Origin: Schizochytrium sp. TIO01
Lineage: Eukaryota > Protista > Bigyra: Labyrinthulomycetes
Assembly: GCA_004764695.1 (NCBI GenBank)
Contig: SMSO01000004.1
Span: 558,001 to 622,000, forward strand
Direction of reading: 5' to 3'
Length of the DNA stretch: 64,000 nucleotides
A program made the position numbers and the translations under genes. This document shows, piece by piece, positions 3,001 to 22,514 of this stretch. Positions within the stretch are counted from its first letter, which is position 1. Each line of letters starts with the position of its first letter. The notes beneath the pieces are model-generated. The model ran no database searches, was not told the origin of the DNA, and saw nothing but the letters and a program-made list of their open reading frames with translations.

Positions 3001-4165
3001 TCGCGACAACTGCCTCGATTTCCTGAATAAGAAGGAAAACGCGAAGCTCTCGCGGGCGATGAGTCCAGTAAAGAGAGTTTTTAACGCATCCTTTCCAGTA
3101 TTCTGGTACACCACTCTCATAAAAGCCTTCTAGCATTTCATTGGGCATATGCTGGTATATAATGTGAGCTGCTCGAAGCTTTGCCAAAAACTTAGGGTGG
3201 TAATCCTCCATAATGGAATTGGCTAACCCCCGGGGATCGGGAAATTTCGCAGTGCCTGCAAGCACCTCAAGGCTTTCGTCACATGCCGAGTGTGCTTCTG
3301 TGAATTGCAAACAGGTTTTGTCAAAGGACTCTGCAAAGTAAAGAATTTTTGACTCAGGGTTCAAGGCGGCTGCAGCCCAATGCGTAACGCAACCGAAAAC
3401 TATGGCTCTAGGTATTTTATCCCCTTTTGCAAGCAGTTCTTCCAAACTGCCATATACGCCAATTTTTCCACACAGCCTAACATCATTATCAACAAGGAAC
3501 TGCATCTGTGCCTGGTCCATAGTGACTGACTGAATGCCACTTGTGGACCAGAGCTGCGCTACGCGATTGTAGTCATACAGTGCTCGGAGCCAACGAAGCG
3601 TTTCGCACCAGAATAACTCGTCGAGTCTACTTCTGTGAGGATAAGGTTGAATAAGCTGCATAGCGTTGAAGAGAGCATGGAACCCGCACGCATTAGGATG
3701 CCACTGACGCAGTGATGTAGGTTGACAAAACGTGACATCACCGACTTTGAACTGATGCACCACATCCTTAATTTCTGGGGTGAAGGTCTTCTTGTTTCGA
3801 CCTCCATTGTTATCATCACACGATTCATTGCGGAAATCTTTTGCAGCAGGAGTGGCAACAGAGAGCACAAAGCCACAGAGAATTTGGCCAACACGTTCTG
3901 CAGAGGTGTTGCAGGAAATCTCGAGTTGGTTTTCAATACCAACACCCCTCAGACGTGTCCGAATGCTTATCTCAAGCCGTGTATCCCGTTGTGCATCGTC
4001 AATTTCGCGAGCTAGATCTGCTGCAAGCACAAGATTTTCACCAGGCTCTGGGCAATCACGTACGCAACGCACGAGTTGAACACTAGTACTAGATCCTTTG
4101 GACTTGGTCTCAAGTTGCTTCAGAAGTTCTTGACCGAGGCCATATACTTCTTCGCGCCACGACAT
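90..4165 (-). CDS. Multidomain fusion: papain-like Cys peptidase + ThiF/MoeB/E1-like adenylation domain + SelO/atypical kinase-like domain. Exon 1 is 4165-403, exon 2 is 217-90, and the gene continues beyond the left edge.
   Basis: 1257-aa ORF. Peptidase-like motifs: RQWHPNACGFHALFN ... VTHWAAA ... LYFAES. E1 motifs: FDRQ, VVGTGGVG, LLDYDKVDASNLTRQ, DIGKSKV, CPFC/CELC. C-terminal motifs: YRIKGCG, RRLGDH, HCNSHANNMVI, APVDFD. Splice signals: GTAAGT donor at 402, branch GCTAAT plus TTGCAG acceptor at 218, and a second GTAAGT donor at 89. Exon 2 reads in frame (QMGMRTSLAGSNFTSTGVANE...AAFRDTL). Confidence 0.8.
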
Positions 4166-4538: not shown

Positions 4539-4610
4539 GAAATAATTCCCAATACAAAGTTGGTAGGAAGGTACCTAGGTAAGACAGAATTTACCAAGGT
4601 TAACCATCAT

Positions 4611-4667
4611 TCTCACTTGTCAGAGGCAACTCCTATCAATCTTTTAAACTTGAGTAAAAACCAAGCC
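4611..4667 (+). repeat. Single arm of the ~55-bp repeat family
   Basis: TCTCACTTGTCAGAGGCAACTCCTATCAATCTTTTAAACTTGAGTAAAAACCAAGCC is similar to 4486-4538, to 8899-8957 and to the reverse complement of 8808-8862. Confidence 0.75.
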
Positions 4668-4882
4668 AAACAATCACTAATTGGTAAAGTGATCGAAAAG
4701 ACTAATGTGAATTCCAAGTAAGATATCAGGTACGACGGAATGGTTTAAATAAATTATAGGCCACCAACCACGTGAAAGGCAAACGTCTTCAAGCATGACT
4801 GCAGTTCTCTAGTTACCGTTTTTGTTTTAGTATTTCAAGCAAACATCTATTTCAAAAAACAACATCTTGATAAGCTCAGTTT

Positions 4883-7800
4883 TTATATATTTACAGGTCG
4901 TGTTATATTTAGTTTTCTTCGTTTTGTATGCCCTGCTATCTTCTTCTGGGAAGAAACGTGGCATTTTGAGATTGATCTTGCACAACGTTTGAGGGACTTT
5001 CTGAGCTTTTCCTTTGTCATGTTTGTTTTATCACCCTTATTGCCATCATCATCATCATCATCATCATCATCGTCTTCTTCTTCTTCCTCCTCCTCCTCTT
5101 CTTCTTCAATATCAGTGTTATTGATATGTTTGTGCTTCGAGAGGAGGTCAAGTAAACTTTTCTCAGAAACCTCTTCAAATCTACCCTTTGCCATTTTCTT
5201 GCTGAAGAAGTCTGTGAGCAGCTTGATAACATTGCGTTGCCCTTTAGCTTCGGAACCTTTGAAAATATTGACCAACCATATCTCGATCTCTTCTTTAAGC
5301 ATCTGTGTGCTGCTATGAGTAAAGGTATCAGGGATTTGAACTAGGGTGTTCTTGTGGGTATACAGTTTCTCCTTTTCATACAGTGGTTTGCACGCGCCAA
5401 ATATGGTAAAACACATGCTTGATGGAAAATACTCCTGAGCATGTTTGCGCATCTTGGCTTGTGCCATTTTGTGGATCTTTTGGAGCATACTATCGAGATC
5501 ACCTTCACAAGTGCATTCACTCAGCATGGAAAACATTTGCGTTTCTAGTTTCAACAGCTCCCACATCGATGCTGAAACGTGTAAACTTGGGGCAGCATTG
5601 TGTGATGTGATGCCGTGACATACCTTTCGAACGATGTCGAGAGCTTTTGTGTGGTCGATTCTTCTTTCTCTTCTCTGCAGGTAGACTAAGTCTGTTAGCT
5701 GCACCGTGTGTTGAAGAGACTCTATTGCAATAGAGTTCTCAAACATATCCATTCCAACAACTATAATCTTCAACTCTTTTCTGCATCGACCCTGCGATTC
5801 TCCGAAGCCACTGTGAACTAGCTGAATCAGTTCTAGGACTGCTTGAAGGTAGTAAACACCAACTTTGAGAGGCACTCGGAAAACAGTTTCATCAGACGAT
5901 TCACGCTTTTGCGCTTTCAAGCCCAACAACCAATTTTTCCAACGCTCGAATTTGTCTTCTTGGAGAAAAATTCGCTGTTTTCCAGACTTGAAGACATCTT
6001 GGTTTAACATGTGAGTCCTATCTTTGGTGAATATTTGACGAATAAGTGCTTCCACGTTAACTCTCTTTAGCTTTTCAAGGAAAAAGGCATTTACGAAAAG
6101 TTCTGGCTCTTTGTAGCCGGCATTGCACCGTTTCGTTGAATAGGCCGCAAAAGTAACGACAGAGCATTTCTTGGGGTTGCACGCGATCATTTCTTCGGCC
6201 ATCCATTTTGCAATCAGGATATGGCCTACGTTTGAGCTGCGAATATCAGGAGTCTCATCAAAACTTGCAGAATACTCGTTTATGATGAGGGTACAGGTAG
6301 AACCTGCACGCCTAGCGAGCTTGTCTAGCAAAGCTAGATAAGGAATCGGAATCCCTGGCTCGATGGTAGCCTTCGTAGAGTTTAACGAGCAGAGAACTTG
6401 CCTGAAAGTATCTGAGCATGCCCCGTGAAAGTTCTTACGTGGGAAAGTTGTAATCTTCTTGGTGATCAACATGGCTTGATCAGTATCTTCAAAGTTGACC
6501 GGAACTAGACCTCCTTGTCCTCCTTTCCCTAAACAGTATCCAGACGCAGGTTGAAGACGGACAAAAGACAATGACTTCTCCCCGTACATATAATGTGACT
6601 TCAAACACTTCACAGCCACGAGGCTGATGGGAGAAGTAGTAATCAAAGTCAAATGCCGTTTCCAGCGTGGCCAAACTGACTTCGCAAAACTACGAGCAAA
6701 TGATGTATTTGCAAGCACTCTATGTGCCTCGTCAATAATAAGATAATCAGGTTGTCTCGTGATAGATTCTGCTTTTGATTTCCGCTTACTGTTTCGAAGA
6801 AGTTTACGGCTCAGACTATACTTCCCGCTCGTTAGACGACAAGTGAAGTTCACAGATGAAACCTCATGGCTTGATTCAATGGTAGAGGAGCATGTTCGTT
6901 GCCAAGGCCCTGCCCTCAAGCCCTGGCGTTTTTGGTCAATCTCCCAGTTTGCAATTTGCTCTGGAAGAACATGCATGCCTTTCGGACATTTAACTTCATT
7001 ATAGATGGTGAAGTATTCGTAGTTTAAAGTTTGCACTAATAATTTCATCTCCAGCTTCTTTTGACGTTTACCACTTGAGAGTATCAGCACCCGCTGACCT
7101 AGAGTACCTGCTTGAACTAAGCCTCGTACCGCGATTGCGCGATAATCTAGCTTGAGAGGGCTCTCTGACGTAATAACCACTCGTTTACGACCCCAGAAGC
7201 TCTTAAAGAGCACTGACTTTGGATTCAAGAGTTCTTCGGCCTCAACAATCTTTTTCAAGAGCTCGTATCCAATACTAATGATGAGGATACACTGAATCAC
7301 TGATGGAACTATAATCGATTGGTGTTTTAGCTCGATTCTGAGAGCTTTGCCAATAGCTGCTACAACCTTTGCTTTCTTGCGCAATTTGGCTGCATCATCA
7401 AGAACATCAAGGCCAAATGCTTCGCATTCTCCTGTCCCGTCTTTCCAGACAACACTCTCAAAGTAGGTTCGCTCAAAAGCTTTCTCAATGAGAATGCTGC
7501 GACGTGTTCTGGATGGAGATTTGTGATATGGTAGGCCCTTGGAAGCCATGTGTCTTGCGCCAACGCTATCATCTGTACTTTCACTAGACTCACTCTCAAT
7601 TTCTGGTTCGTCACTAATATCCACGTCATTGGAAGAGGCTCTGCCGTGATATGACGGACCTCGTGAAATTACGTGTCTTGCACCAACTCTACCACCTGAA
7701 CTTTCACTAGAATCGCTCTCAGTGTCTGAATCATCACTGATTTCCGAGCTGTTGGAACAGGGTTTCATGTAATACGGTCCAAATGGAGCTTTTTGCCTTG

Positions 7801-8371
7801 TGTCAACCCTATCATCTAAAGCATCAATCGAATCTCCCGAATCGTCTGGTTTATCACCAGCCTCATCACAGGAGAAGCTCTCAGAAACAGCATTAGCCTT
7901 TGGGCTGGAGTTGCAGCTGAGTCTCCTCTTGCTACACTCCCAATCGAAGGCATCGGTATGAGAAGTCAGATCATCGGGACCTTCGTTAAAATCATCTTCA
8001 TCTGAGTCATCGCTAACCTCATTGCGATCTCGATCAGGGCTTAATTCTGTATCTTTTCCAGAGCCCTTGGCTTGCTCATGGTCAGGCCCAGGGTACTCCA
8101 AGGTATTTTCTTGACTGAGCTCTTCAGAGTTCTCAACTACGGCATTCCCGGCTGTGATATCATCAGCAGAACGCTGCTTCGGCTGCAACACGGAGGCTTG
8201 TTCAAGGCTCCCAACCAGAGCATTCTTGTTTGTGATACAATCAGCAGAGTATCCCTTCGGCGCCAACCCGGAGGCTCGCTTGGCATCGTGCGACTGCACA
8301 GACTTGCGCCCGTGTGAATTGGAATCGCTACGATATTCAGTGCATGGCTCAGGCTGCTCGTTGCTTGTCAT
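4883..8371 (-). CDS. Degenerate (probably ATPase-dead) Z1-like SF2 helicase, paralogue of 13654-17346, with acidic disordered N-terminus and C-terminal poly-E/D tract plus basic tail
   Basis: 1183-aa ORF with TTG at 8434 and first ATG at 8371. Collinear similarity to the 13654 protein: FKSFWGRKRVVI/FKKFWRRGRAVI, YLIIDEAH/HLILDESH, TSFAR/TQFAR, SNVGHILIAKW/INIGHGKIALW, VQLTDLVYLQ/IQLTDLVYLQ, RIDHTK/RIDQTR. GKT is absent and QxxGR is replaced by DIVRK. Confidence 0.8.
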   Translation of the reverse strand: MTSNEQPEPCTEYRSDSNSHGRKSVQSHDAKRASGLAPKGYSADCITNKNALVGSLEQASVLQPKQRSADDITAGNAVVENSEELSQENTLEYPGPDHEQAKGSGKDTELSPDRDRNEVSDDSDEDDFNEGPDDLTSHTDAFDWECSKRRLSCNSSPKANAVSESFSCDEAGDKPDDSGDSIDALDDRVDTRQKAPFGPYYMKPCSNSSEISDDSDTESDSSESSGGRVGARHVISRGPSYHGRASSNDVDISDEPEIESESSESTDDSVGARHMASKGLPYHKSPSRTRRSILIEKAFERTYFESVVWKDGTGECEAFGLDVLDDAAKLRKKAKVVAAIGKALRIELKHQSIIVPSVIQCILIISIGYELLKKIVEAEELLNPKSVLFKSFWGRKRVVITSESPLKLDYRAIAVRGLVQAGTLGQRVLILSSGKRQKKLEMKLLVQTLNYEYFTIYNEVKCPKGMHVLPEQIANWEIDQKRQGLRAGPWQRTCSSTIESSHEVSSVNFTCRLTSGKYSLSRKLLRNSKRKSKAESITRQPDYLIIDEAHRVLANTSFARSFAKSVWPRWKRHLTLITTSPISLVAVKCLKSHYMYGEKSLSFVRLQPASGYCLGKGGQGGLVPVNFEDTDQAMLITKKITTFPRKNFHGACSDTFRQVLCSLNSTKATIEPGIPIPYLALLDKLARRAGSTCTLIINEYSASFDETPDIRSSNVGHILIAKWMAEEMIACNPKKCSVVTFAAYSTKRCNAGYKEPELFVNAFFLEKLKRVNVEALIRQIFTKDRTHMLNQDVFKSGKQRIFLQEDKFERWKNWLLGLKAQKRESSDETVFRVPLKVGVYYLQAVLELIQLVHSGFGESQGRCRKELKIIVVGMDMFENSIAIESLQHTVQLTDLVYLQRRERRIDHTKALDIVRKVCHGITSHNAAPSLHVSASMWELLKLETQMFSMLSECTCEGDLDSMLQKIHKMAQAKMRKHAQEYFPSSMCFTIFGACKPLYEKEKLYTHKNTLVQIPDTFTHSSTQMLKEEIEIWLVNIFKGSEAKGQRNVIKLLTDFFSKKMAKGRFEEVSEKSLLDLLSKHKHINNTDIEEEEEEEEEEEDDDDDDDDDDGNKGDKTNMTKEKLRKSLKRCARSISKCHVSSQKKIAGHTKRRKLNITRPVNI
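7520..7860 (-). repeat. Intragenic tandem duplication, about three units of 40-41 codons
   Basis: Anchors TGTCTTGCGCCAAC (7551), TGTCTTGCACCAAC (7674) and TGCCTTGTGTCAAC (7794). Peptide units ISDDSDTESDSSESSGGRVGARHVISRGPSYH and ISDEPEIESESSESTDDSVGARHMASKGLPYH. Confidence 0.75.
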
Positions 8372-8574
8372 TGTTCCGTCAGGGCAAACACAACAACTCA
8401 ATTCAATTAAAGGCTCTGCAGTATCGGTATGCAATAGGGGACTGCAGCCACCAAATGCAGAATCTATTGAGCTCTACCTACTTATAATAAGCTAGTTACT
8501 GGTAGCTCGAGAGGCTCAATTTCTCACTTAACCAACTTGAAGCAATAGTGGGAATTGGAGCCACTCTGTCGTTT

Positions 8575-8577
<3 letters not shown>

Positions 8578-8607
<30 letters not shown>

Positions 8608-8631
8608 CTTCTTCTTCTTCTTCTTCTTCTT
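8578..8631. repeat. (CTT)n microsatellite
   Basis: About 18 perfect CTT units. Confidence 0.95.
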
Positions 8632-8795
8632 TAATTTCTTTAAAAAAACTAATGCTCATATCTTTGATATCGCTCCCAGTTTTAATCAATATTCTCTTCT
8701 TCTTTTCTTCTTCGGCTCTTCCTCGTCTCTTCTTTTGTTACTTCTACTTGTGTTTTTATTTTCTTGTTCCTCCATGTCGGCCCTGGCTGATTATT

Positions 8796-8957
8796 CTGGC
8801 TTGAACATTTTTTTACCCAAGCTATAAGATTTTTAAGGAGCTCCCTCTGACTAGTATGAGTGAACAATAAGAACGCAAAACTCAAGTCAAAACAAGCACT
8901 CTCACTAGTCAGAGGCAACTCTTTGACTTCTTTTAACTTAGTCAAAAGTCAAGCCAG
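8796..8957. repeat. Imperfect palindrome, hairpin copy 2 (best preserved), ~60-bp arms and ~35-bp loop
   Basis: Inner arms CCTCTGACTAGT (8844-8855) and ACTAGTCAGAGG (8904-8915) pair perfectly. Outer CTGGCTTGA (8796) and TCAAGCCAG (8949) also pair. Confidence 0.8.
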
Positions 8958-10190
8958 CTCAGCTGGTAGGAATCACATCAGTGGCAGACCATATGAGGTA
9001 CCCATGAGGTACCTAACTAGTAATTTACAGTTTAGGTGCATTGGCATTCTATTTAGCGGCAATCCTTTCCGAAGAGGCCAAAGAAGTAGGCAGTATACGT
9101 TTGCAGCCCGTGTGACATACCTATAGCGATACGTATCGCTCAGCTTGAGTTGAAAATTTTATGGAGAAAAGCAAATGCTCAGACCAAGTGCCCGAGCTTT
9201 TCTATCTACCATAGTACACTGCCCGCTTTGGTTCTTTCACTGGCAGGTTTTTAACGAAGTAAAAGGGTTGCTGCTATTAGTCAGAGGCGTTACTATCAAT
9301 GGTATTCACGTTCTTTTACTTGAAAACTCAATCAAGTACATATTAGGATTGAGAAGAAAGTTTTGACTTGTGATACATACCGGAGGATTTTTTCTGGGCA
9401 GCGACGGGATGCTAGTCAACATCGTCGTCGAACAATTGTAAACTGTAGACCACTCTCACTATCCAGTCAAACTATTTCTCTTGGGATGTTCTAGGGCGTG
9501 CCCGACTGAGTCTACTCGTATAGCAAACAATGGCAAGAACACCGTCAAACTTTTTTAATACTGCTTGAAGATCGAGGTCGCGTTCCTCCATCTTGTGGAA
9601 AATTCTGAGCATAGTCTCATGATGTCGAGCATTGTCTCATGAGGAGCATGCTGGCTGGAGTGGAAATCTTCAAGCTTGCTCCTCCTGAGACTTCACCCAG
9701 TGTTCAAGCCTACCAAAACAAGTTGCCCAGTCAAACTGACGGAGCTATGCAATTGAGCAACTCTCGCTCTTTTTCTCTCCCGATATTTCTTTTTTCGTCG
9801 TGCCGCCTCTCGAAGCACCTTTCTTAAAAACTATGCTTTTACTTAGGTGAGTTGAAACACATGCCAACCTCCAAGCAGATACCACCTACCTACCCAGATA
9901 GGTGTTCTTCTTCTTCAAGGGCCTGTAGCAACATGTAATCATAAGAACACCTTGAGTAAATCGTGCATTTAGCAAAGAAAAAGGATTTAGTTACTGGTAC
10001 CGTACCTTATAGTTAGCTACTGCTACCTACTATACCTAAGCGACGCAGCCCACAACTCAACTTTTACAACAAACCGGCGAGGTGTTGTGCTAGAAACCTA
10101 GCGAGAGCCACAACCTTTCAATCGGGCAAAGCCTTAGGGCGAGTATCAGCCACCCATACCTAACCAGAAAGCTTGTGCTCTCCTATAATT

Positions 10191-12299
10191 ATGGAGCCTA
10201 AAGCACTGAAATATTCAAAAGAGCAGGAGGAGATTATCGCAACAGCGTGCGCTCCTTCAGATGATGACAGACTGGTTCGAGTTACTGCGGCGGCAGGCAC
10301 TGGCAAGACAACAACAATCATTGGCGTAGCAGCCCGTTTGTGCAGTCTTGGTCATGAAGGACTTACGTATTTGACCTTTAATGTTAGTGCAGCTGCTGAC
10401 GGCGCAAAACGCTTAGGACCAAGTGTCTGCTGTCGCACCATACATGCTCAAGCGCTTCATTGCTTGAATATGCCAAACCCACATATAAAAGATGAATCTG
10501 CAGTGGAAAGGCTCATCACCAAACACTGTGAAGATGACATCAAGACCATGTGCCAGAGAATCTCCCCCAAAGGAGATGACAAGTCACTCCATAAAAAACT
10601 GGCCAAAACCCTATCTTTCTATATTCGTAAGACTCTCGAACGCTTTACGAACTCTGCAGACCCTATTGATGTAGGATTTGATCCACAACAGTGGTTTACA
10701 ACCTATTATCCAGCCAAAAGGTTTCATCAGCAACCTCCTGCAGGATATGAAGACATTGGCAAATGTGGGGATTTCTACGTCCACAATGCTCGGAAGATAT
10801 ACGAACTTCTTCGACCTGATCCAGACACCAAAACTTCAAAGGCTGGATACACGACTTACGACGTAATGATGAAAGAATGCCAGCTTCAAGGTTGTAAAAT
10901 TCCAGGATCTGCCTTGCTGGTTGATGAGTCGCAGGACTGCAGCGAGTGTCAAATCGCCTGGATAGAATCCAACCGGGAAGGAAAGGTTATTTACCTTGTT
11001 GGAGATGCTGTGCAAACAATCTATGGGTTTCGTGGGGCAAAGTCAAAATTCCTGCTTGGTGTTAGAAATTGCATAGACAAGAACTTGACAACTAGCTTTC
11101 GTTTTGGCAAGCACATTGCTAGTGTTGCCAACTCAATTCTTTTTGTGAAGCAAAAGGTATCACCAAACGATTGGAGGCATTACCGTTTAACCGGCGGGGC
11201 AAATAGCGAAGGCGAGGTTTTTTTTAGTTCTCCAAATGTTTCAGAGAATGAGATCTTTCCTTTAACCGTCCTTGCATTTTCCAACCACGCCCTCCTTGAA
11301 TGGGCTCTTCGGTATTTTGCTAGGCAAGCAGAAGATGATCGTAAAAGTTTATCTAAACCTCTCTTGCGTTTTGCAGTCAATGGTGATGGTGAAAACTCTG
11401 GGCGTAAGAGGTGGCTATCAGTTTTAAAAAATATTCAAGCATGTATTAAATTATACACTGGAGCAGCAAACTCTTTGCCTGACTTCCCAGAGTTTGAGGG
11501 AGAAGAGGTGTCTTGGGATGAATTTAAAGAAGCTGTGACCACTCGTGAAATGGGCAAATATTATCTTCACGTCAAGATTGTAGACGCATACAAAGAGGAC
11601 ACCGCAACGGTTATGCAGGCGTTTAAAGAAGATGTCATTGACGCAAACCACCCAAAGGAGCATGCTGATATCATACTCTCAACGATCCATGCTGCCAAAG
11701 GCGCAGAGTGGGAAAATGTCCTGATCTGCGAAGACATGTCTCCTCTTCATGGCATTAAAGTTGAGGAAGACAGGAACATTCAAAAACATGGTTTTCAGCG
11801 AGCTGACAGTTTCCAGGGGTTGAAAAAGAGAGCTTCTTTTACAATGAACGAGTGGAAAAACGAAATTAACCTTTGGTATGTTGCAGTCACCAGAGCCAAG
11901 CGTCGTCTTTTTCTCCCTAAGAAGCTTGAAGCCCTCTTCCAATGCTATGGCGAAGTCAAGGCCATGGCGGAGTCAAATGCTAATGAGCTGGGGCTGATCA
12001 ACGATGAGGATGCTAGCTTACCATTTTCAGGAAAACAAATGCTTTCGCTTGACGATGTTCGTTTAATTGCCGAGCATATCGTATCCCCTTGGATCGTGGA
12101 AATGACAACCGGTGGTCACTTGGACTCCCCTGTCTACGATATGTATCGTAAATCGATGGAAAAAAAGTTTGGAGATATCAAACGTGAGGTAGAAACTCAA
12201 GAAGTAGACAGTGATGAAGATGCAGCAGCTACAGCAAGCCATCAACCGCACGAACCTGTATATACCAGAGGAGAGCCTCCCAAAAAAAGGCAAAAATAA
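10191..12299 (+). CDS. UvrD/REP-family (FBH1-like) SF1 DNA helicase without an F-box
   Basis: Motifs AAAGTGKTT, LLVDESQD, VGDAVQTIYGFRGA, LTTSFRFG, LSTIHAAKGAEWENV and LWYVAVTRAKRRL. First ATG at 10191 (the track starts at TTG 10173). C-terminal PPKKRQK. Confidence 0.92.
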   Translation: MEPKALKYSKEQEEIIATACAPSDDDRLVRVTAAAGTGKTTTIIGVAARLCSLGHEGLTYLTFNVSAAADGAKRLGPSVCCRTIHAQALHCLNMPNPHIKDESAVERLITKHCEDDIKTMCQRISPKGDDKSLHKKLAKTLSFYIRKTLERFTNSADPIDVGFDPQQWFTTYYPAKRFHQQPPAGYEDIGKCGDFYVHNARKIYELLRPDPDTKTSKAGYTTYDVMMKECQLQGCKIPGSALLVDESQDCSECQIAWIESNREGKVIYLVGDAVQTIYGFRGAKSKFLLGVRNCIDKNLTTSFRFGKHIASVANSILFVKQKVSPNDWRHYRLTGGANSEGEVFFSSPNVSENEIFPLTVLAFSNHALLEWALRYFARQAEDDRKSLSKPLLRFAVNGDGENSGRKRWLSVLKNIQACIKLYTGAANSLPDFPEFEGEEVSWDEFKEAVTTREMGKYYLHVKIVDAYKEDTATVMQAFKEDVIDANHPKEHADIILSTIHAAKGAEWENVLICEDMSPLHGIKVEEDRNIQKHGFQRADSFQGLKKRASFTMNEWKNEINLWYVAVTRAKRRLFLPKKLEALFQCYGEVKAMAESNANELGLINDEDASLPFSGKQMLSLDDVRLIAEHIVSPWIVEMTTGGHLDSPVYDMYRKSMEKKFGDIKREVETQEVDSDEDAAATASHQPHEPVYTRGEPPKKRQK

Positions 12300-12616
12300 G
12301 ATCATTCTTTGTAGCTTGATGAGTTGTACTCCAGTAACTCGTTATAACAAGGAAGGTGAGTAATCCATTTTAATTAATTTTTTCTAAGTCGATTTTTTTT
12401 ATTTTTTTTAAAGAGAGGTGAAGACAAGTAAATTATTGCAGAGATACTATAGCTCAATAACCCTTTTTTTAATCAATAATTTATTATTGATTTTTTAAAA
12501 ACTATTTTTTAAAATGTGTTTACCAGTCTGGGTTTGCGCTTGTTTTTCTAGGTTGGTTTATTGGATTATCTAGCTAGATAATGTCATTTGCTCATGAGAG
12601 TGGTAGGTAATTATAT

Positions 12617-12656
12617 TGACTCAGTTTCAATACCCAAGTCCAAAGATTGATAGGAG
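12617..12656 (-). repeat. Inverted single arm of the ~55-bp repeat family
   Basis: The reverse complement CTCCTATCAATCTTTGGACTTGGGTATTGAAACTGAGTC matches CTCCTATCAATTCTTTGACTTGGTCAAAACCCAAGTC at 4502-4538. Confidence 0.7.
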
Positions 12657-13184
12657 GGTGAAGAATGGAAATCGAAGAGTAAGTAAAAACATTGTATTTG
12701 ACGTGAATTTACAACCCAGTATAAGTACTAGTACCTACCTAACTATATATACAGAAATATCTACCATTAATGAATGTTGTTGAGACTGAGTGGGGGAAGT
12801 GTGCGCTCCCAAAATTAAATGACTTAAGGCCTAAATTTAAAAGTAGGTACGTCGTTCAATCAAAATAAGGAAGTAGGTATGTCGCCAAAAGTCAGAGCCC
12901 GCTCCTTCTAATCTATTTACTTGAAAGAGAGCTCCATTAGAAACGTAAAGGTAGGCGGTAACTACTACCTATGATGTCGCAAAGAAAATAAGTTCAAGAT
13001 TCTCACCACAACCATCAATCTGACTGGCTTGATTGCACTACTAGTGCATATGCATACTATTCTAAAAATTCTTCATGCATTTCTGGATGTTCTTCACCCC
13101 TGACTGTGTTCTTCTGCTACAACTCAATCTTGCAAAAATGCCCATGATCACGACTGTAATATAGAAGTCGAATAACAATTGAAG

Positions 13185-13290
13185 TGTTTCTCTAATCATT
13201 GATAGGTGTTTATATCTATATACTCAGTCGCAACCTGAGTGGAGATAGTCTCACTGTCTCTACATGTCAGATAGAGGCACCTCTTTGAAA
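13185..13290. repeat. Degenerate hairpin copy 3 of the repeat family
   Basis: ATTGATAGGTGTT (reverse complement AACACCTATCAAT) at 13198-13210, then GTCAGATAGAGGCACCTCTTTGA at 13266-13288, similar to GTCAGAGGCAACTCTTTGA at 8908. Confidence 0.45.
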
Positions 13291-13653
13291 ACAATCATGA
13301 GCTACTCAGTATTTTAAGTGATTGTTTGGAACTTTGAAAAATATTCTCTTTTTTTTCTTTTTTTTAAGTTTATCACTGTGCTCTCGATAGCCAGTACAAC
13401 TTCTTGCAATACTTATCAAGCTAGTAAAAACACAAGCTACATCGTCCACTCATTCAAGTTTGCCAGTGCTCTCACTATCGGGCGCTTACCTACCTATGCC
13501 ATGTTTGCTCTCGTTTTGTTTCTAGGAACTTTGTTGGCAGTCCTTATGGCTTTTATTTTTATTTTTTGCTGTTGTTAGTTATTTTAGTTATTTAATGTTT
13601 TATTTTAAAAACGTCTTTTTAATTCTAAAGGGGATAAAAATAAAATTAAAATA

Positions 13654-16600
13654 ATGCGTAGGGCCAAGCCGTGTTTATTATGCTATGTACCTTGCAAAGT
13701 TTGCCATGTAAACGTCTTTAGGCAAAGCAAACCCAAAACAAAATCGAAAGCTAAGTCTACAGGCTTCGGCTTAGAAGTGGCTCAGAGCAGAGAAGCACTT
13801 GAAGCGACCATGCAACAAGCTAAGAATGCGCTTTCCCAAGGAAGGATAGATGCTGCTGCACTAGGCTTTTGCGGTGAGGGCGGCCTCCAGTTCATTATTC
13901 TTGCTATCAATTCTGAAAAGCACATTATACATTCTCTTAATATGAGCGGAACTAATATCGATGACAATCTAGTTCTTTACCACTTAGCTCCTGCGCTCCG
14001 TGCGTCCCGCAACAAAATCAAGGAGTTAGATCTGAGCAATAACTCAAAGGTTGGCTGTAGAGGTGCACAAGCAATTCTTTCAATTCCTGGCATCACTAAG
14101 CTGTGCTTAGATGAACTTGATCTAAGAGAAGCAAAATCCGACTTCTTTGGCTCTATGCTGGATCAAAGTGACGTTGAAGATCTTTCGATTCGGAATTGCC
14201 ATCTTCCTTCCGAAACTGTTGCCACGTTAGCTTCTGTAATGGAAACTAGGAACAGAATCTCCAAAGTGAATTGCGAGGGGAACCAGGCATTTACCATGGA
14301 GAACATAAATCAACTGCTCCAGGCTGTCTGCAGTAGAAAAAATCAACTTCATATATCAATTGGACTTCAAGATATCCCCGAAGAGCAGCGAAATTCTCTA
14401 ATAAGAAAAATTAACAGTCGTACAATTCTCCACGACTGTGTAAATCTAGCGAGTGATGAAACCAAGAAAAGAGTTACAAGCAGCCATGATGAATCTGCAA
14501 GTAGCAGTGACGAATCTACAAGCGACGATGAGACCGGGAGCGAAGGCGATGAGTCCTGCGATTTTATGTCAGCAGACTCTGAATCTGATTCTGAGTCAGA
14601 CGATGACAATGATCAAGGCGAGGACGATATTGACGATTCTGAAGAGACTATAACCAAGGCTTTTTCCAGTTTGAAGAACAACTACTTTGGAGATGTCCGA
14701 TTTGATTCACGAGAGAAGCGAGCTGCAGTTACTCTAAATCAACTAGATTGGAAACGCTGGATCCCAGTTATCAATGAGATGGCGAAGCTTTTGAGGCCTG
14801 AAAAGACCTTTGAGTCGCTTGTGCATCTTCGAATAGGTTGTGCGCTTATGGCAAATGACTCGGAAGCTGAAAGTCTCATTGATATCCACTCAGACGTTTT
14901 CAAAAAGTTTTGGAGACGAGGCCGAGCAGTAATCTCATGTATTATGCAAGGTGGGAAGACCAAACGTGCAATATTTTACAGAGGCTTCATTCACGGCGGT
15001 GTGTGTAACAAGCATGTTGTTGTCCTTGCAAACTCGCAGCGCACAGCCTATCATGACATGCGTAGTGCTGTTAGTGACATGAATAAGCTCTACAAGAGGG
15101 AGGTATTGAAAAAAATGGCTTCAAGCAACAAACACAAACATGGTATGGGTAGAAAGATAAAATCCGATCGGAATAGTTACATTCCAGAAAGTGTATTCCT
15201 CTACACTCGACTCAACCAAGTAGAAAATGTGTTATCGATCCAAAACAAGAGCCGCTCGGAAGTTCACTTTAACATTCGCTTAGCTAACGTTGCCGGCATT
15301 CGGAGCCTAAACGACCCCTTTCGGGGTAAACTTGGCCAAGTGTTCAATTCAGAAACTACCCATCTTATACTTGATGAATCGCACGAAGCCATGACAAAAA
15401 CTCAATTTGCTAGAGGCATCTGCATGGAACTTCAACATTGGGCGGATGTGTCTTTCGTAACAGCAACTCCAAGCTCGAATTTTATCCTTGACAGCAAGCT
15501 TGGAGATGAATTCACTCCTGTGGATATCCGTCCGCGCCCCGGATACTATCTCTATGGGCCTAATATGAAGGATCCCTCGAAGGACTCTTTGGATGATGAT
15601 CAACAACGTATTCTTGTAGTTAATCATATAGATGTGGACAAGTTCTTCAATGGAAACATTTTAAATAAAAAACCATCCAAGCACAACTTCCCCTACAGTA
15701 GTTTCCCACTTACCCAGCGCGAACAGAAAAAAAGGGAAAAAGAACGCAAAAAAGACCAGGCTTTGGAGGGTGAAAATGCGAGGTCAGAAAAATCAGACTG
15801 CATTATCCCAGAAAATCAGATTGAAGCGCTCAAGACCTCGTTTGGCAAGAATTTAGACCGCTCTAAGTTTCTGATTGTACTGAATGATTTTTCATCTACA
15901 AGCTTTCAAAAGAATCGAAGCATTAACATTGGGCACGGGAAGATTGCACTTTGGCTAGCACAGCATGCCATCAATACCCTTAATAAATTACAGCCAAAGG
16001 CAAAGGCAAAGTCGAAGGCAGAGTCCAAGTGGAAGCGTGCGTCTATTGTTACGTATTCTGTGTACAACCACTGTCGTGTCGACAATCGTTTTGGTAAGCC
16101 ACATATCTATATGAATTCGGCACTTTGCCGTCATTTAGCAACCATTCGTGTTGGAGAGTTCGCCTCGAAATTTGTGACATTGGATGCCGCTGAAGCAAAC
16201 TCAAAATGTCTTATCACACAGCGGCAACAGGAGGATTTTATGTCGTACTTAAAAGCTTTGAAACATGCAGCCGATGTGATATTGAAGAATGCGGACCGAA
16301 AAGGCAGGAATGTAAAAGGCCTCCCTATTCAATGTCGGAGAGATAAACGTTCCAAAACGAGAACTTACGAATTTGAAGTAGCAAAATTCATGGACATTAA
16401 GTTTGTGCTGAGTTTCATTCAACATCTGCATGAGACACGGATGCCAAAAGAGGACGACCGTCCAAACTTGGATTACAGATCATATCCACTGCGAATTGCA
16501 ATCGTTGGCAAGCAGCTCCTCAAACAAGCAATCAATGTGGAATCGAAAGATCGTATAATTCAGCTTACTGATCTTGTTTACCTGCAAAATCCTAACTCTA

Positions 16601-17346
16601 GGATTGACCAAACAAGGATGCTGCAGGCGCTTGGTCGTGTCAACCACGGTTTTAACAGAAAACAGTTCTACACTAGCGCATTCGCGGAACAGAAGTTGGC
16701 AAAGATGGACGAGTTAAAGCAGCTTGAACATATGAGACCCAAAGTCTGGTTACCATCAAGTCTGAAGAGATTTCTTTTCGAAACACCCCAGCTACAACGC
16801 ACTGCCGCAACCCTCAAATCGGGTTCAATTCCGTACTTTCTTGATTGTTTTCATACATTGGAATTGAAGGGGTCTGTTCAAGCAAACGCAGATGGAATGC
16901 GTGAACTCGAGAAGCAAGCCCTTGATGAGACACTAAAGAACCTGCCTCGAAGCAAAACGCAAATCAGGTTCCCCAAAGTCAAGTCATGGGTAAACGGCAT
17001 TTATCAAAGTTTAGCTTCAGCAAAGAATAAATCCTTGTCAGAAGGCGACCGTGTCAGCATAGCTAAGCGTCTAGTAGCTCTGATTAACAACTATGACTAC
17101 CGTCCAGATTTTGACAGTATTCTTGACATTTGCGACAACGAAGATCATGCAACACCTACCGATCGTATGCTCCTCAAATTTTTAAAAGATGACAACATGA
17201 AGGATGAACTCTGGAAAACATTATTTCTAAATCAACGAGGACGCTCATCAAATGCAGGCACGAAGAGAGGGAGAGCAACGCAAGCTGTCAATAGAAACAG
17301 AGATAAGGATAAAGGGGGGCAGAATAAAAAGCTGCGCAAGCGGTAA
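13654..17346 (+). CDS. RNI-like leucine-rich-repeat + acidic linker + Z1-type SF2 (DExH) helicase/ATPase
   Basis: 1230-aa ORF. LRRs: IHSLNMSGTNID, IKELDLSNNSKVG, ITKLCLDELDL, VEDLSIRNCHL, ISKVNCEGNQ. Helicase motifs: ISCIMQGGKT (I), LILDESH (II), VTATPSSNF (III), RPRPGYYLYG, IAIVGKQLL (V), DQTRMLQALGRV (VI). Basic tail KKLRKR. The true start is uncertain: possible TTTAG acceptor near 13720, or Met at 13810. Confidence 0.82.
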   Translation: MRRAKPCLLCYVPCKVCHVNVFRQSKPKTKSKAKSTGFGLEVAQSREALEATMQQAKNALSQGRIDAAALGFCGEGGLQFIILAINSEKHIIHSLNMSGTNIDDNLVLYHLAPALRASRNKIKELDLSNNSKVGCRGAQAILSIPGITKLCLDELDLREAKSDFFGSMLDQSDVEDLSIRNCHLPSETVATLASVMETRNRISKVNCEGNQAFTMENINQLLQAVCSRKNQLHISIGLQDIPEEQRNSLIRKINSRTILHDCVNLASDETKKRVTSSHDESASSSDESTSDDETGSEGDESCDFMSADSESDSESDDDNDQGEDDIDDSEETITKAFSSLKNNYFGDVRFDSREKRAAVTLNQLDWKRWIPVINEMAKLLRPEKTFESLVHLRIGCALMANDSEAESLIDIHSDVFKKFWRRGRAVISCIMQGGKTKRAIFYRGFIHGGVCNKHVVVLANSQRTAYHDMRSAVSDMNKLYKREVLKKMASSNKHKHGMGRKIKSDRNSYIPESVFLYTRLNQVENVLSIQNKSRSEVHFNIRLANVAGIRSLNDPFRGKLGQVFNSETTHLILDESHEAMTKTQFARGICMELQHWADVSFVTATPSSNFILDSKLGDEFTPVDIRPRPGYYLYGPNMKDPSKDSLDDDQQRILVVNHIDVDKFFNGNILNKKPSKHNFPYSSFPLTQREQKKREKERKKDQALEGENARSEKSDCIIPENQIEALKTSFGKNLDRSKFLIVLNDFSSTSFQKNRSINIGHGKIALWLAQHAINTLNKLQPKAKAKSKAESKWKRASIVTYSVYNHCRVDNRFGKPHIYMNSALCRHLATIRVGEFASKFVTLDAAEANSKCLITQRQQEDFMSYLKALKHAADVILKNADRKGRNVKGLPIQCRRDKRSKTRTYEFEVAKFMDIKFVLSFIQHLHETRMPKEDDRPNLDYRSYPLRIAIVGKQLLKQAINVESKDRIIQLTDLVYLQNPNSRIDQTRMLQALGRVNHGFNRKQFYTSAFAEQKLAKMDELKQLEHMRPKVWLPSSLKRFLFETPQLQRTAATLKSGSIPYFLDCFHTLELKGSVQANADGMRELEKQALDETLKNLPRSKTQIRFPKVKSWVNGIYQSLASAKNKSLSEGDRVSIAKRLVALINNYDYRPDFDSILDICDNEDHATPTDRMLLKFLKDDNMKDELWKTLFLNQRGRSSNAGTKRGRATQAVNRNRDKDKGGQNKKLRKR

Positions 17347-18490
17347 AAAAGGAAGGACAAAGCACATATCCCCTTTGAATTGACAAGGACCAACTTCTGG
17401 CGCACAACAGCTCCTATCACTAATTTGTGTCTTGTTGATGTGTGCACATTCATAGCCCTAGAATAATGAAAATAAGAAGAATAATTTTCTGTTGAATGAA
17501 GAAGTTTTGTTCTGTTGCTAGGCATTTTAGTACCCTAAGTTACTTTCTGGTTCATGTTCTGCCACCCCACCTGAATGGCCTAAAGTTGACCTTACTTATC
17601 AGCATTATATATGAGCCTTGTAAAATACGTCGAGTTTATGCTGGACAAAGGGCTAATACCACAGATACAATTACTTTGATTGAGAGTTAGTGATTTCCTG
17701 AAGCGAATCAGCTCTTCCTTCCACACGCTATTCAAGGTTTATGAAATGTTTAAACACTTTTATAATTCCAGGCTTTAAAGACTCGATGCAATACATTAAA
17801 ATTTTGGTGGATCGTTTTGAAGTCTACATGTTTTTGCCTGAGGCGATTTGCTTTGATGAAACAAAACACGTTTTTTTAAAATGCAGGTTTAATTTTTATA
17901 CTTTATATTTGCTCTAAACCTTCTTTTTGTCTGTACATAAAAGAAACTGAAGATAGTTCTTTGCGAGAATTTAAACTGACGTGATCTTTTGGTTGTTCTT
18001 TACTTGTGAGGGACACCCCCATACAACCCAATCAAATCGGATGCTACTTTCTTTGATAGTGTCATATATTCATTAAAGTTCCCATTAGTTGCACGATGCG
18101 AAGCCTTTCAATTTAACGGAGCTTGTCAACTCTGCTGAAAATCCTCAAAATGATTGTGGATCGTCTACACCTATACGAACATGTAAAGTTGATGGTTTAG
18201 TCGGTTTTACGACCGAACACTACACTGCTGTCATACAATGCGCACCGCATATCTTGACAAAATAAAGGAAATTTTCTTTGTGAATAGTTTCGACTAACAA
18301 GGCACATGTTTTTGCATAATGTGTAATGATTCTTCATACATCGTGATTTACTTGAATATACGCCCAACTTGAAGTAAAAAGAACTAGATTACAATTCTAT
18401 TTCATATTGTTTATTATTTTCTTTTCAAGTTGTAAACAGAATTATTATTGCATACACAGGGCCTATATAGTTTTTATATAGTTTGTATTT

Positions 18491-18498
18491 AAAAAAAA
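18491..18498 (-). terminator. RNA polymerase III oligo-T terminator of tRNA-Lys
   Basis: T8 run on the minus strand, 3 nt after the discriminator base. Confidence 0.8.
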
Positions 18499-18501
18499 TT
18501 G

Positions 18502-18573
18502 TTCCCAATGAGGGGATCGAACCCTCGACCATTTGATTAAGAGTCAAACGCTCTACCGCTGAGCTAACCGGGA
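18502..18573 (-). tRNA. trnK-CTT: tRNA-Lys (anticodon CTT)
   Basis: The reverse complement TCCCGGT TA GCTC AGCGGTA GAGC G TTTGA CTCTTAA TCAAA TGGTC GAGGG TTCGATC CCCTC ATTGGGA A folds as a full cloverleaf with A and B boxes. Confidence 0.96.
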
Positions 18574-21500
18574 TTCCTTGAAGGAGTTTGATGCACCGAA
18601 GCATCGTCTATTTCCCATAATTGAGACGCTGATGTGCCCTGACACATATATACCTTGTATATTACACATAACATTTTATTTATTTAAAAATTCGGCGATG
18701 ATAGTATGATGCGCTGAGTTCGATGTAGAATAAGTAATGTCTTAAGAGGCATATTTGTAGTTGATATCTTCATCAATTAGAAAGGAGGACCACCAATCAA
18801 GATGGCAAGTCACACGACATAAACGAGCACATTAATGGGAGGAGCTTCAGAGAGTTTCACTCCTCCAGTTAAATTTGCACTAATATCATTTGTCTATATT
18901 ATTTAATGATCTAACAGATACATAGAGTTACCACAATTCTGAAGTAAACCAATCAATCTCTTTATGGATAATAAAATATGGATTTAATTTATGCCTAGAA
19001 AAGATCCTAATTAGGTTCTATCATTTACGCTGTATGGCTAGGGCGTTATTGGTGGCTGCCCGTCTTGAATATCTCAATCAAACCAAAGTGATAGCAAAAC
19101 TTCATCTTGAATCTTGTATTGCTTTTGTTTAAAAGATGAAAAGTATTAAAACGAGGAGTTGAAAGCGAAATTAATAGGAACAAGCTTCTCCTTTCCGGTT
19201 GGGACATTAACAAAACAAACATATCCTTCTCGGTTGTATTGTCATATCCCCTGGTTGATTGAGCAGTATTTCCATTTGCTTTGTTTGCACTGGGGCCTAT
19301 GCCACGTTGTGGCTCGAGATCCTAATCCTTTATTTTCACCTGAGATTGGATAGCCTTCGTTTTCCAGGAGTTTGATCTTTTAAATGGGCTTAGAATTAGT
19401 ATATTTACTATTGACGACTCTTCATTGAGATTCAATGCGTTAGTATGGGCAGTGTTAAGATGCGCTTAGGATTATATTATGGGTATGCCTTTCAGTGATT
19501 AACAAATGTCAACACTTGAAGCAAGCAAGTATTCGAAATAACTCCTCATCCAATTGATTGATTGTAGCTAAATGAACCCAGCCATGATATGAATTCTGGA
19601 TATTCATTAAAGCTTCTCAAGGAGCTCCGTTACGGAATACCTTTTCATTCGCATTCGGAACTGTTCACTTCATCTTCCCGTGTTGGACAAGCTCCAACTT
19701 TTAATAACACTTCAATAGCTGCTCGCTAAAAAGATTATGATATGAACCCCTCAGGGGACTCGAAATAGATGAACCAATGCAATGAATACGAGCGTATTCG
19801 AATGATAGATATATTATATACATGAAGAGAGACACGAGGTTTCTCGAAACAATGTTGCTCATGTCATGATTCCCGGTCGATTGTAATATGTACAGTCTGA
19901 CGCGAAATGATGAAACTAACTAACTAAATAGTATTGAGGTAGTTGAGTTACTCTACTGAATAATTAATTCATTTACGTTTATTACATATAATGTATAGAC
20001 AATGTATAGATTAATCTTACTATTATTGTTTGTTAATTACGCATGTTTTATATTTTTTGAAGAGGATTCATACTATCTCATGCTTTGTGCTTGAATTATC
20101 TTAAAATAACAAAATAATACATAAATTGGTTAATTTAACACAAAATATATAATTTATCAATAATAATTGAATGATTATTTATTAAATATTAAAAATGAAT
20201 TATATTTTGTTTATTTTTCAATAAAATATATTTATTGTGTTGAAATTGAATTAAAGTACTATCATAATCAGGAAATTTTAACATATAGTAAGAAGATACT
20301 AGTTAATATAATAATAGTGTTGTGATTGTTTCTTAAGATCTCAGTTAGTCATGCAAAGGCCTAGTAAAGAAAATTCTTTTCACTAAATAAAAGTGAAGGT
20401 CTGTTTACTTTTAAAATTCCATAAGGTCTGGGTCAGGTGCGAAATTAAAAAATACCCTTTTGTAGAACGAACCTGTTGTGTGTTTGTTTGTTTTCACACT
20501 TCAATCAGTCATCTACATACAATCAAATGTTGCATTTTCAAGAGTATCGATCATTTCTTTTCTTATCCTTCTTCGTTGCATCTCCAGTATTAATTGATTC
20601 CTTTTCCAATCAAACAAATGTCAAGCAAGTTAGTTTTTTCACAAGTTTGAGGCAATTCACGTTTTGTTGGGTGAGAAGCTATTCGAGAAAGAATCATTGC
20701 CATGAGTTTGTATAGAATAAACATAGAAAAAAAAAAAAAAAAGTAGAACGTCTCTGTTCTGCACAAATGTACAGACTAGACAGCGTCTATCATTTATTGC
20801 AGTTAAAATTATCGTGGTGTTAAGTAAGTTAAATGGTGCAGTACAAAGAGAGCTATTAAATTTTGATACCATTTGGTCCTTTTCTCATTGCTGAGATCTC
20901 CAATCGAAGGAACCAGTGGACAAGACATTGCTAGAGTTCTTGGTGTCCCTTTATAAAACCCCAGTAGACATAAGGTTTACAATTGAGCAAGGATGAGTCT
21001 GGCTGCCGGAGCCAAGAACTAGAAGTGAGAATACATAGATATCACTTGTAATACATCCAAGCATGGTGTAACTTGAATCGATGGTTGGAGAAGTTGGATT
21101 AATAACCTAACCCCAACGATTCTCTCTAACTTTCAAGAATGTCTTAATCTCCTAAATTACTACATGAATCCATCTGTCCTGAAATTAATTATCCAGCTAA
21201 CTCTTAAAGTCAACCTTCTTAAGGCCTTCATCAAGCCTCTTGCCTTCGTCTTTACAGTCAGTCAACCTCAGGCTAATCAGAATCACCTCTCAGCACTCAT
21301 ACTAACTCAAGTACATGACTTGCTTAGTTTTCTGGTTTTAAATAAAAGTGAAGCTGCTATATTTAATCACTGTTACAATAAAGGGCCAGCGAACTCGATC
21401 AAGTCAAGCTTTTATAATGTAATAATGATATTATTTCTTGCTTGTATAGTACACTGCTTGGTTCTATTACGCTTTAGAACGAATGTTGAAATCGAACTTA

Positions 21501-22514
21501 ATCACTTACCAAATAAAAGATCGTTTACAATGAGATGATAGTTGCGTACATCTTCACGGGTATTGAGTAGAATGCAGGTTTGTTAATTTTTAAATATAAC
21601 TACAACAGACAACAGATAGCAATAACATACACTAGTTACTATTTAAACATGAATAAACTAGATATTGCCGAACTACATTCAATAGTGTTATGAAACTTAA
21701 ATCTGTAAGGTTTCATTAGCCGTCTTCTAAAGCATAAGCAAGCTCTTTCGTCTTGTAAATGAGTATAAAAACAAAAGATATATCTTATGTATTGTCGTCT
21801 TATATTTGTAACCGTTTTGTTCATCTTATTTCGAATCAGGCCTGCCTCCTTCCCTCGTTCTTTTCTCAATGAACTGACTTTTTGAGTCTATCTACCAATA
21901 CAGATAGAACAAATTGTGTGATATTGTTATTTGATTTTACCACCGATAAATTCTCAGTTGCAAGCTCGGTATACCGCATGAAGAAGTGTATATGCTAATT
22001 TGAATTTAAATAATATATTTTAAAAAGGGGTGGGAGACATTGTTGCTTCCCGAGGCGTACTTTGATGATAATGTTGAGAGGCGAAAGATTATATTGTAGA
22101 AAAATAAATAAAAAAATAAATAAGAAAATAAGAAACGGAACAAAACATGCTGAGTGACAGCACATTATCCTTTGAGTTCAGGTAAGAATACTGATAGAAG
22201 TAGCATCTGACTGATAAGAATTAAACAAATTTGAAAAGAAAGGAATTAAATCCTAGAGGCACTTTATGACTTCTGATTTTAATATTATTACTAATATTAC
22301 TATTACTGTTAATACTACTATTATTACTATCAGATGAAGTGACCGACCCAGACTACCGATAGGTATCTAAGATACTAGCAGTTTTTAATTGACAGCTCAC
22401 ACGATCGAAGACTGACTGAGCTGGTTGTCGGTCCCTTTGCAACATACGTGGAGCAAACGGAGCCTATATCTCCCTTCCTTAAAGTCCTTTTGAAAACAGT
22501 ACCTGAATTTGTGA

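Follow-up and report, generated by a model that had tools for sequence, protein, structure and literature searches.

An intact and a degenerate paralogue of a narrow SF2 helicase-like family on either side of an FBH1-like gene in a protist genome

Three helicase-type genes within 12.5 kb

The DNA considered here is a window of 64,000 nucleotides, positions 558001-622000 in a 64-Mb, 37-contig eukaryotic assembly (contigs labelled C3, C24, C34 and so on), whose left 17 kb holds a row of four long intronless open reading frames (ORFs) that we call g1, A, U and B. Two genes for superfamily 2 (SF2) helicase-like proteins, A (4883-8371, minus strand, 1162 amino acids) and B (13654-17346, plus strand, 1230 amino acids), flank U (10191-12299, plus strand, 702 amino acids), which encodes a superfamily 1 (SF1) helicase of the UvrD family; all of this takes place inside 12.5 kb, with the outer genes divergent in orientation. 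An earlier note, made from the letters of this DNA, had described the three helicase-type genes and read them as one nuclear surveillance system. The ORFs bear out the genes, their coordinates and their strands, and the middle gene does carry UvrD domains, but the system as such fares less well. With a probability of roughly 0.55 for the whole of it, we propose that A and B would be two old paralogues of a small, fast-evolving, lineage-restricted family of SF2 helicase-like ATPases, one intact and one degenerate, and that their adjacency around U is probably not that of a conserved module.

By their sequences A and B are true paralogues, with 24% identity over 734 amino acids (BLASTP, E 4e-29), and the collinear blocks that the earlier note had quoted, QLTDLVYLQ, N.GH..IA.W and FK.FW.R.R.VI, are present in both. 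That note had also contrasted a catalytically intact gene with one lacking the Walker A GKT and the QxxGR of motif VI, and an alignment of A and B with three homologues from the thraustochytrid Hondaea fermentalgiana upholds the contrast. Walker A reads IMQGGKTKRA in B and is lost in A (SESPLKLDYRA); motif II is kept (LILDESH in B, IIDEAH in A); motif III is TATP in B and TTSP in A; and in motif VI, where B has LQALGRVNHG, A has LDIVRKVCHG, with the Q, G and R all replaced. Motifs I, II, III and VI are thus found in B, in a third paralogue of the same genome (paralogue C, below) and in most relatives, whereas A is without I and VI.

We believe that B, with QGGKT, DESH, TATP and QxxGR all in place, would be an intact motor as far as its sequence tells. 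A would have lost the ATP-binding lysine as well as the glutamine and arginine finger of motif VI, in a frame that is nevertheless intact and seemingly transcribed, and may serve as a binding or regulatory paralogue with a dead ATPase, or else be a gene whose constraint has relaxed. The two proteins are built differently around their cores. A, as given by its ORF and translation, has an acidic and serine-rich N-terminal third, a core at about residues 295-945 and a basic C-terminal tail, and its frame stays open upstream to a TTG at 8434. In B a leucine-rich-repeat-like part and an acidic linker precede the helicase-like core (14641-16743, plus strand, residues 330-1030), which is the family-conserved part. 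The basic tails that the note had seen at the end of all three proteins are present in the translations as TKRRKL, PPKKRQK and NKKLRKR; they are short, C-terminal and may act as nuclear localisation signals.

The ORF of U starts at 10173, with its first ATG at 10191, and its product matches the Pfam domains UvrD-helicase (PF00580, 9.1e-17), AAA_19 (PF13245, 1.1e-11) and UvrD_C (PF13361, 2.4e-10), so that its description as a UvrD-type SF1 gene holds. Its best solved relative by far is F-box DNA helicase 1, FBH1 (9xzj_F, E 1.4e-23, against 8.6e-6 for UvrD), and its Hondaea orthologue, of equal length and 45% identical, is annotated under the same name. In its UvrD-type SF1 core U thus resembles FBH1; it differs in having no F-box, the N-terminal feature by which FBH1 proper is defined and for which Pfam gave no match, and in starting directly at the helicase core, with Walker A about 35 residues from the start. 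A further UvrD-type gene of the genome, on contig C34 (L010:256-3303, plus strand, 1015 amino acids), has a sub-threshold F-box (E 0.008) at residues 182-206. This gene is probably the likelier canonical FBH1, and U an F-box-less paralogue. There are many homologues of U in named records of raphidophytes, diatoms and chytrids and among environmental proteins, some of them fused to SAP or PARP-type zinc fingers. On this sequence evidence U belongs to a broad FBH1-like family of DNA metabolism, spread much more widely than the family of A and B, and it would most likely work alone in DNA repair or replication.

Near-identical copies of the locus were found in several public runs, and for the region 4600-10599, which takes in A and U, we compared three assemblies of 20-39 Mb, guessed to be RNA, with one 63-Mb DNA assembly; the contigs give neither strand nor level, and the RNA nature of the three was inferred from their pattern of coverage. 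The RNA-like assemblies cover A from 5115 to 8427-8543 with no gaps or stops, leave intergenic positions 8600-9700 empty and start again shortly before U, at 10089-10165 (9714 in one), while the DNA assembly covers everything. A and U appear to be transcribed unspliced, each from its own 5' end, the two ends lying about 1.5 kb from one another.

Between A and U, which point away from each other, the intergenic region (8372-10190) contains (CTT)18 at 8578-8631, just upstream of the start of A, and (CAT)9 within 5036-5114 encodes the Asp run that opens the Glu/Asp-rich stretch of A itself; the contigs of all runs break at the trinucleotide runs 5036-5114 and 8567-8640, so that assemblies fragment there. 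The same spacer holds a short inverted repeat (arms 8835-8862 and 8897-8924), and a 78% copy of this element lies downstream of A at 4602-4647. Since pieces of several other genomic contigs map on 8877-8923 in the DNA run, the element is a dispersed short repeat, possibly MITE-like (resembling a miniature inverted-repeat transposable element) or regulatory; a BLAST-type search of the genome with the repeat (8825-8940) found only the self-match. The next gene downstream of A, and on its strand, is g1 (392-4165, minus strand, 1257 amino acids), a fusion in which a Cys-peptidase-like N-terminal part is joined to a ThiF/E1-like domain (PF00899, 3e-25) and to a large C-terminal domain. Only 5 relatives of g1 were found in 5.8 billion clusters, and its Hondaea orthologue, 60% identical, is annotated MOCS3. 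Downstream of B an AT-rich stretch (17347-22500, GC 0.32-0.41) has no ORF of more than 125 amino acids and includes AT-rich tandem repeats at 22100-22330.

The family of A and B

Pfam, PADLOC and PDB sequence searches gave no direct family assignment for A or B, only sub-threshold ResIII/DEAD matches at the DExH motif. A profile made from six cores returned, out of 1.84 billion representative proteins, just 14 proteins or clusters at E<=1e-3: three Hondaea proteins, a fragment 98% identical to B, paralogue C, and a few environmental or NCBI/JGI proteins. A locus search with a narrower alignment found three metagenomic loci. Paralogue C (1078 amino acids, C24:3423864-3427100) has an intact set of motifs, QSGKT, DESQ, TATP and QQLGR. 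In the tree three clades are seen, B with the Hondaea proteins and P0126, paralogue C with P0127 and P0128, and P0129 with P0132 and P0133, and A stands on a long branch (2.15) outside the clade of B; because of this position A is an old or fast-evolving duplicate and not a recent copy of B. Hondaea supplies the nearest named homologues of g1, A, U and B alike, and the source of the DNA is therefore probably a thraustochytrid of the Aurantiochytrium/Schizochytrium kind. Identity to the homologues in Hondaea is 36-40% for B, 45% for U and 60% for g1. Taken together, the sequences define a new, very narrow and fast-evolving SF2 family of thraustochytrid-type protists and a few environmental eukaryotes.

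The fold of the outer genes was approached through an AlphaFold model of B built on 18 sequences (an earlier model from 6 sequences, with a predicted local distance difference test score, pLDDT, of 43, was discarded), in which the core reaches a pLDDT of 70-94 over about residues 266-1000 of the model. Foldseek gave 40 PDB matches to this core at E<=1e-3, all those listed being SF2 helicases or translocases, with LGP2, MDA5 and RIG-I first (E 2.6e-5), followed by XPF, Dicer, Ski2/Mtr4, Prp43 and HsdR (to 1e-3). By VIA-align about residues 310-1000 of B matched XPD at Z 14.3, the type ISP enzyme LlaBIII at Z 13.8 and many other SF2 motors, among them Hel308, RecQ and Hef, at 11-13. At the level of a structural model, the two-lobe SF2 helicase fold of the outer-gene core is established, as the earlier note had supposed, and no solved subfamily stands out.

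The place of the RIG-I-like receptors (RIG-I, MDA5, LGP2, DRH-1) and the Dicer helicase domains at the head of the Foldseek matches invites comparison, since in these too an SF2 motor, joined to domains for signalling or recognition, serves as a sensor of nucleic acids. However, their TM-scores against the core of B are only 0.2-0.3, no similarity in sequence is detectable, and XPD, type ISP enzymes, Hel308 and SecA are equally high by VIA-align, which makes the match a generic SF2 one.

A row of four long intronless ORFs beside an AT-rich, gene-poor flank (17.3-22.5 kb) could also be what remains of a mobile element, or of an integrated giant-virus segment carrying several helicases. Atlas feature matches to hypothetical proteins of Nucleocytoviricota, at 0.96, point the same way, although we treated them as leads only, and Aurantiochytrium is known to carry mirusvirus elements (PMC12606086). 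Yet no relative of the family was found in 2.9 million viral contigs, the fold matches in BFVD are generic SF2 helicases, and Hondaea has ordinary orthologues of both U and g1. Neither an integrase nor a capsid nor terminal repeats are seen, and on this ground we rejected the mobile-element origin, to which we give a very small chance.

Likeness to DEAD-Z1 motors, a probable LRR and a TIR fusion

The outer genes had been called Z1-like in the earlier note, a description of which part survives. Pfam Z1 (PF10593) matched neither A nor B at E<=1, nor nine of their relatives at E<=0.1; a six-frame search of the whole genome with the same model gave nothing at E<=10, the control genome being positive, and PADLOC had no match for A or B. 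The picture changes when profiles are compared with profiles. For this we used hhalign with 11 Z1 proteins from gammaproteobacterial genomes, and with HsdR, RecQ, SNF2 and reversed Z1 as controls (DinG/XPD, PF06733, was sought for the control set and found in none of the 26 genomes sampled). Against Z1 the family of A and B scored 83% (E 8.6e-6), against HsdR 8%, RecQ 13%, SNF2 0.6% and reversed Z1 0.1%. It is the N-terminal, DEAD-like lobe that gives this signal; alone it scored 87% against Z1 and 27.5%, 35% and 1.5% against HsdR, RecQ and SNF2, respectively. The C lobe, which corresponds to the Pfam Z1 domain, is not significant alone (0.1%, E 0.48, on a level with the reversed control), although in the global alignment it is correctly placed, with VG..LLKQSVNVES and Q.LGR opposite IGG..LSRGLTLEGL and QMGRWFG. 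Since Z1 and HsdR scored 84.5% against each other, about the same as the family against Z1, the distance would be of the inter-subfamily kind, at the level of sisters.

The motifs tell a similar story. A glutamine in place of the first glycine of Walker A is a hallmark of DEAD-Z1 proteins (Toliusis et al., 2018, PMC5861437), and Walker A of this type is found in the family of A and B as MQGGKT, CQSGKT and TQSGKT, the consensus of the 11 bacterial Z1 proteins being VQSGKT. Other features of DEAD-Z1 are a short QxxR motif VI and the signature DThhQXuRhFG (PMC5861437; Iyer et al., 2008, PMC2292703); here motif VI is a canonical Q-x-L-G-R followed by V.HG, and becomes Z1-like only if insertions of one residue are allowed. 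DEAD-Z1 proteins also have an H/H motif in the position of motif IV; the invariant S.N.GH of the family falls opposite the region of the second histidine of Z1 (SMLxH...H) only in a global hhalign alignment of low confidence.

Set beside the prokaryotic DEAD-Z1 restriction motors, of which the H-subunits of CglI and NgoAVII are examples, the family thus shares the two-lobe SF2 plan, a QGGKT or QSGKT where these have QSGKT, a TATP followed by P..Y.G, and collinear motifs V and VI (D.T..LQ.LGRV.HG here, DTLMQMGRWFG in Z1), and of the four SF2 groups tested Z1 is the best match. In contrast, the family has no PF10593 match, an insignificant C lobe, a canonical QxxGR, a eukaryotic and putatively nuclear setting and added LRR, TIR and acidic regions. 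Nor do A and B have a nuclease, methylase or MORC partner, their neighbours being the ThiF-fusion gene, the FBH1-like helicase and the AT-rich spacer. A literature search for eukaryotic Z1-type helicases found nothing. Given their sequences, the proteins appear to be the nearest detectable eukaryotic kin of the DEAD-Z1 motors among the groups tested, and not members; 'Z1-like' holds for the similarity of the N-lobe profile and for the Q-type Walker A, but not for the Z1 domain proper or for motif VI.

The leucine-rich repeat (LRR) attributed to B is probable. In the N-terminal 171 residues there is a match to ribonuclease inhibitor (4per_A), at E 8e-4, that recurs in several repeat registers, and the Atlas neighbours of this part are LRR_6 clusters at 0.93-0.95; on the other hand, the Pfam LRR models stay below cut-off (LRR_LRWD1 0.0025, LRR_1 0.0035) and AlphaFold leaves the part poorly modelled (pLDDT about 30). 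We believe that B probably carries an LRR of the ribonuclease-inhibitor type at 13888-14400 (plus strand, residues about 79-249).

A second fusion is found in P0132 (1131 amino acids), which has an N-terminal TIR domain (PF13676 at 4.6e-13, PF01582 at 7.4e-10), then about 480 residues of no assigned nature and then the helicase-like core, inside which the protein model stops. Its clade mates P0129 and P0133 have long Cys-rich C-termini with many spaced Cys and His residues, zinc-finger-like in appearance and with basic tails, for which Pfam gave no match. The LRR and the TIR are found in different proteins of the family.

In attaching an LRR or a TIR to a central NTPase the family recalls the NLR/STAND proteins. 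It differs from them in that the NTPase is an SF2 motor, with no Pfam match to NACHT or NB-ARC in A or B, in that the LRR is N-terminal, and in that LRR and TIR are not joined in one protein. Sensor/helper pairs in which one member is degenerate are known.

Linkage in relatives and the place of the family

The synteny of the three genes bears most directly on whether they form one system, and in the relatives examined the adjacency of A, U and B is not conserved. Paralogue C (L008:2865-6101, minus strand) lies on contig C24, unlinked to A and B and beside a Prp28-like DEAD-box gene. In a metagenomic locus of 17 kb (L102) a single member of the family stands between genes for a kinase, an importin-beta-like protein, a class-3 G-protein-coupled receptor, PP2A-B56 and a carboxypeptidase, and neither a UvrD gene nor another paralogue is found in the 10 kb upstream and the roughly 5 kb of contig left downstream. 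The Hondaea members of the family are on contigs of 882, 216 and 135 kb, the orthologue of U on a contig of 4.4 kb and that of g1 on one of 486 kb. Within these limits, the order of A, U and B appears to be specific to its lineage, since linkage is not conserved wherever it was examined, in Hondaea indirectly.

The three genes could still act as one nuclear surveillance or antiviral module, in which B senses, the ATPase-dead A helps and U unwinds. Two of the three family members of the genome flank U, divergently, within 12.5 kb; in several strains A is kept as an intact and apparently transcribed gene; and all three proteins have basic tails, in a family with LRR and TIR fusions. Enzyme/pseudo-enzyme pairs are, moreover, common in immunity. 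Against this, the adjacency is seen neither for paralogue C nor at the metagenomic locus nor, by contig assignment, in Hondaea; the family of U is widespread in taxa where an exhaustive search finds no relative of A and B; and transcript ends of A and U some 1.5 kb apart leave no tight shared promoter. Because adjacency is absent where it was examined, and with the wider range of U, the module that the earlier note proposed is unsupported and we think it unlikely. An immune-type role for the family, which the same note had in mind, is a separate matter and stays plausible, since P0132 carries an N-terminal TIR. A bolder version is equally unlikely: A and B would be protist-specific, helicase-based innate immune sensors, in which an SF2 motor of DEAD-Z1 stock replaces the STAND NTPase and LRR or TIR has been added, A being an obligate partner of B and possibly handing substrates to U.

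A more sober account would make the family a lineage-specific chromatin or DNA-repair translocase of a housekeeping kind, with no role in defence, B being the enzyme and A a decaying, transcribed duplicate. Acidic and Ser-rich linkers and basic tails are typical of nuclear chromatin proteins, the fold matches include XPD, Hel308, FANCM, RecQ and SNF2-type remodelers, and both the metagenomic member and paralogue C sit among housekeeping genes. The loss of catalytic residues and the very long branch of A fit such decay, as do its strain differences, 5 synonymous and 10 non-synonymous, although the resulting ratio of non-synonymous to synonymous polymorphism (pN/pS about 0.55) comes from 15 sites, too few to separate a constrained pseudo-enzyme from slow decay. 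However, so narrow a distribution (14 clusters), or fusion to TIR or LRR, would be surprising in a housekeeping factor, and the 1162-codon frame of A is intact in 4/4 of the assemblies compared. We regard this account as doubtful, if worth keeping in view.

We therefore return to the lineage-restricted family with its intact and degenerate pair. On this proposal the three genes would be separate transcription units, their adjacency stemming from an old local duplication of the ancestor of A and B around or beside U. Since different members carry TIR or LRR fusions, the family is narrowly and patchily distributed and diverges fast, and its N lobe is nearest to restriction motors, we infer that it may be a translocase or switch on nucleic acids, driven by NTP, that serves their surveillance in the nucleus, or defence. 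Several points weigh against the proposal, besides the 15 variable sites of A. The immune part rests on one TIR-fused homologue and a weakly supported LRR; the RNA-like runs are only guessed to be RNA, and their coverage is limited to A and U; the contig evidence from Hondaea is indirect; and that two out of just three paralogues cluster physically round another helicase remains, under this proposal, a coincidence, a historical accident.

What is new here, as read from the sequences, is an undescribed SF2 family, represented by an intact and a degenerate member with an FBH1-like gene between them and no conserved linkage. Should the family turn out not to be a defence ATPase, it would still define an unannotated and very narrow group of SF2 proteins, and the cluster of three helicases would be a local accident and not a conserved system. 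If it is one, eukaryotes would here have put a restriction-type SF2 motor to use independently, with LRR and TIR added to it, and this would bear on how immune architectures are built from prokaryotic parts. The setting, probably Aurantiochytrium-type thraustochytrids with persistent mirusvirus elements, would be transformable, and the intact and degenerate pair would offer a simple test of partnership between an enzyme and a pseudo-enzyme.

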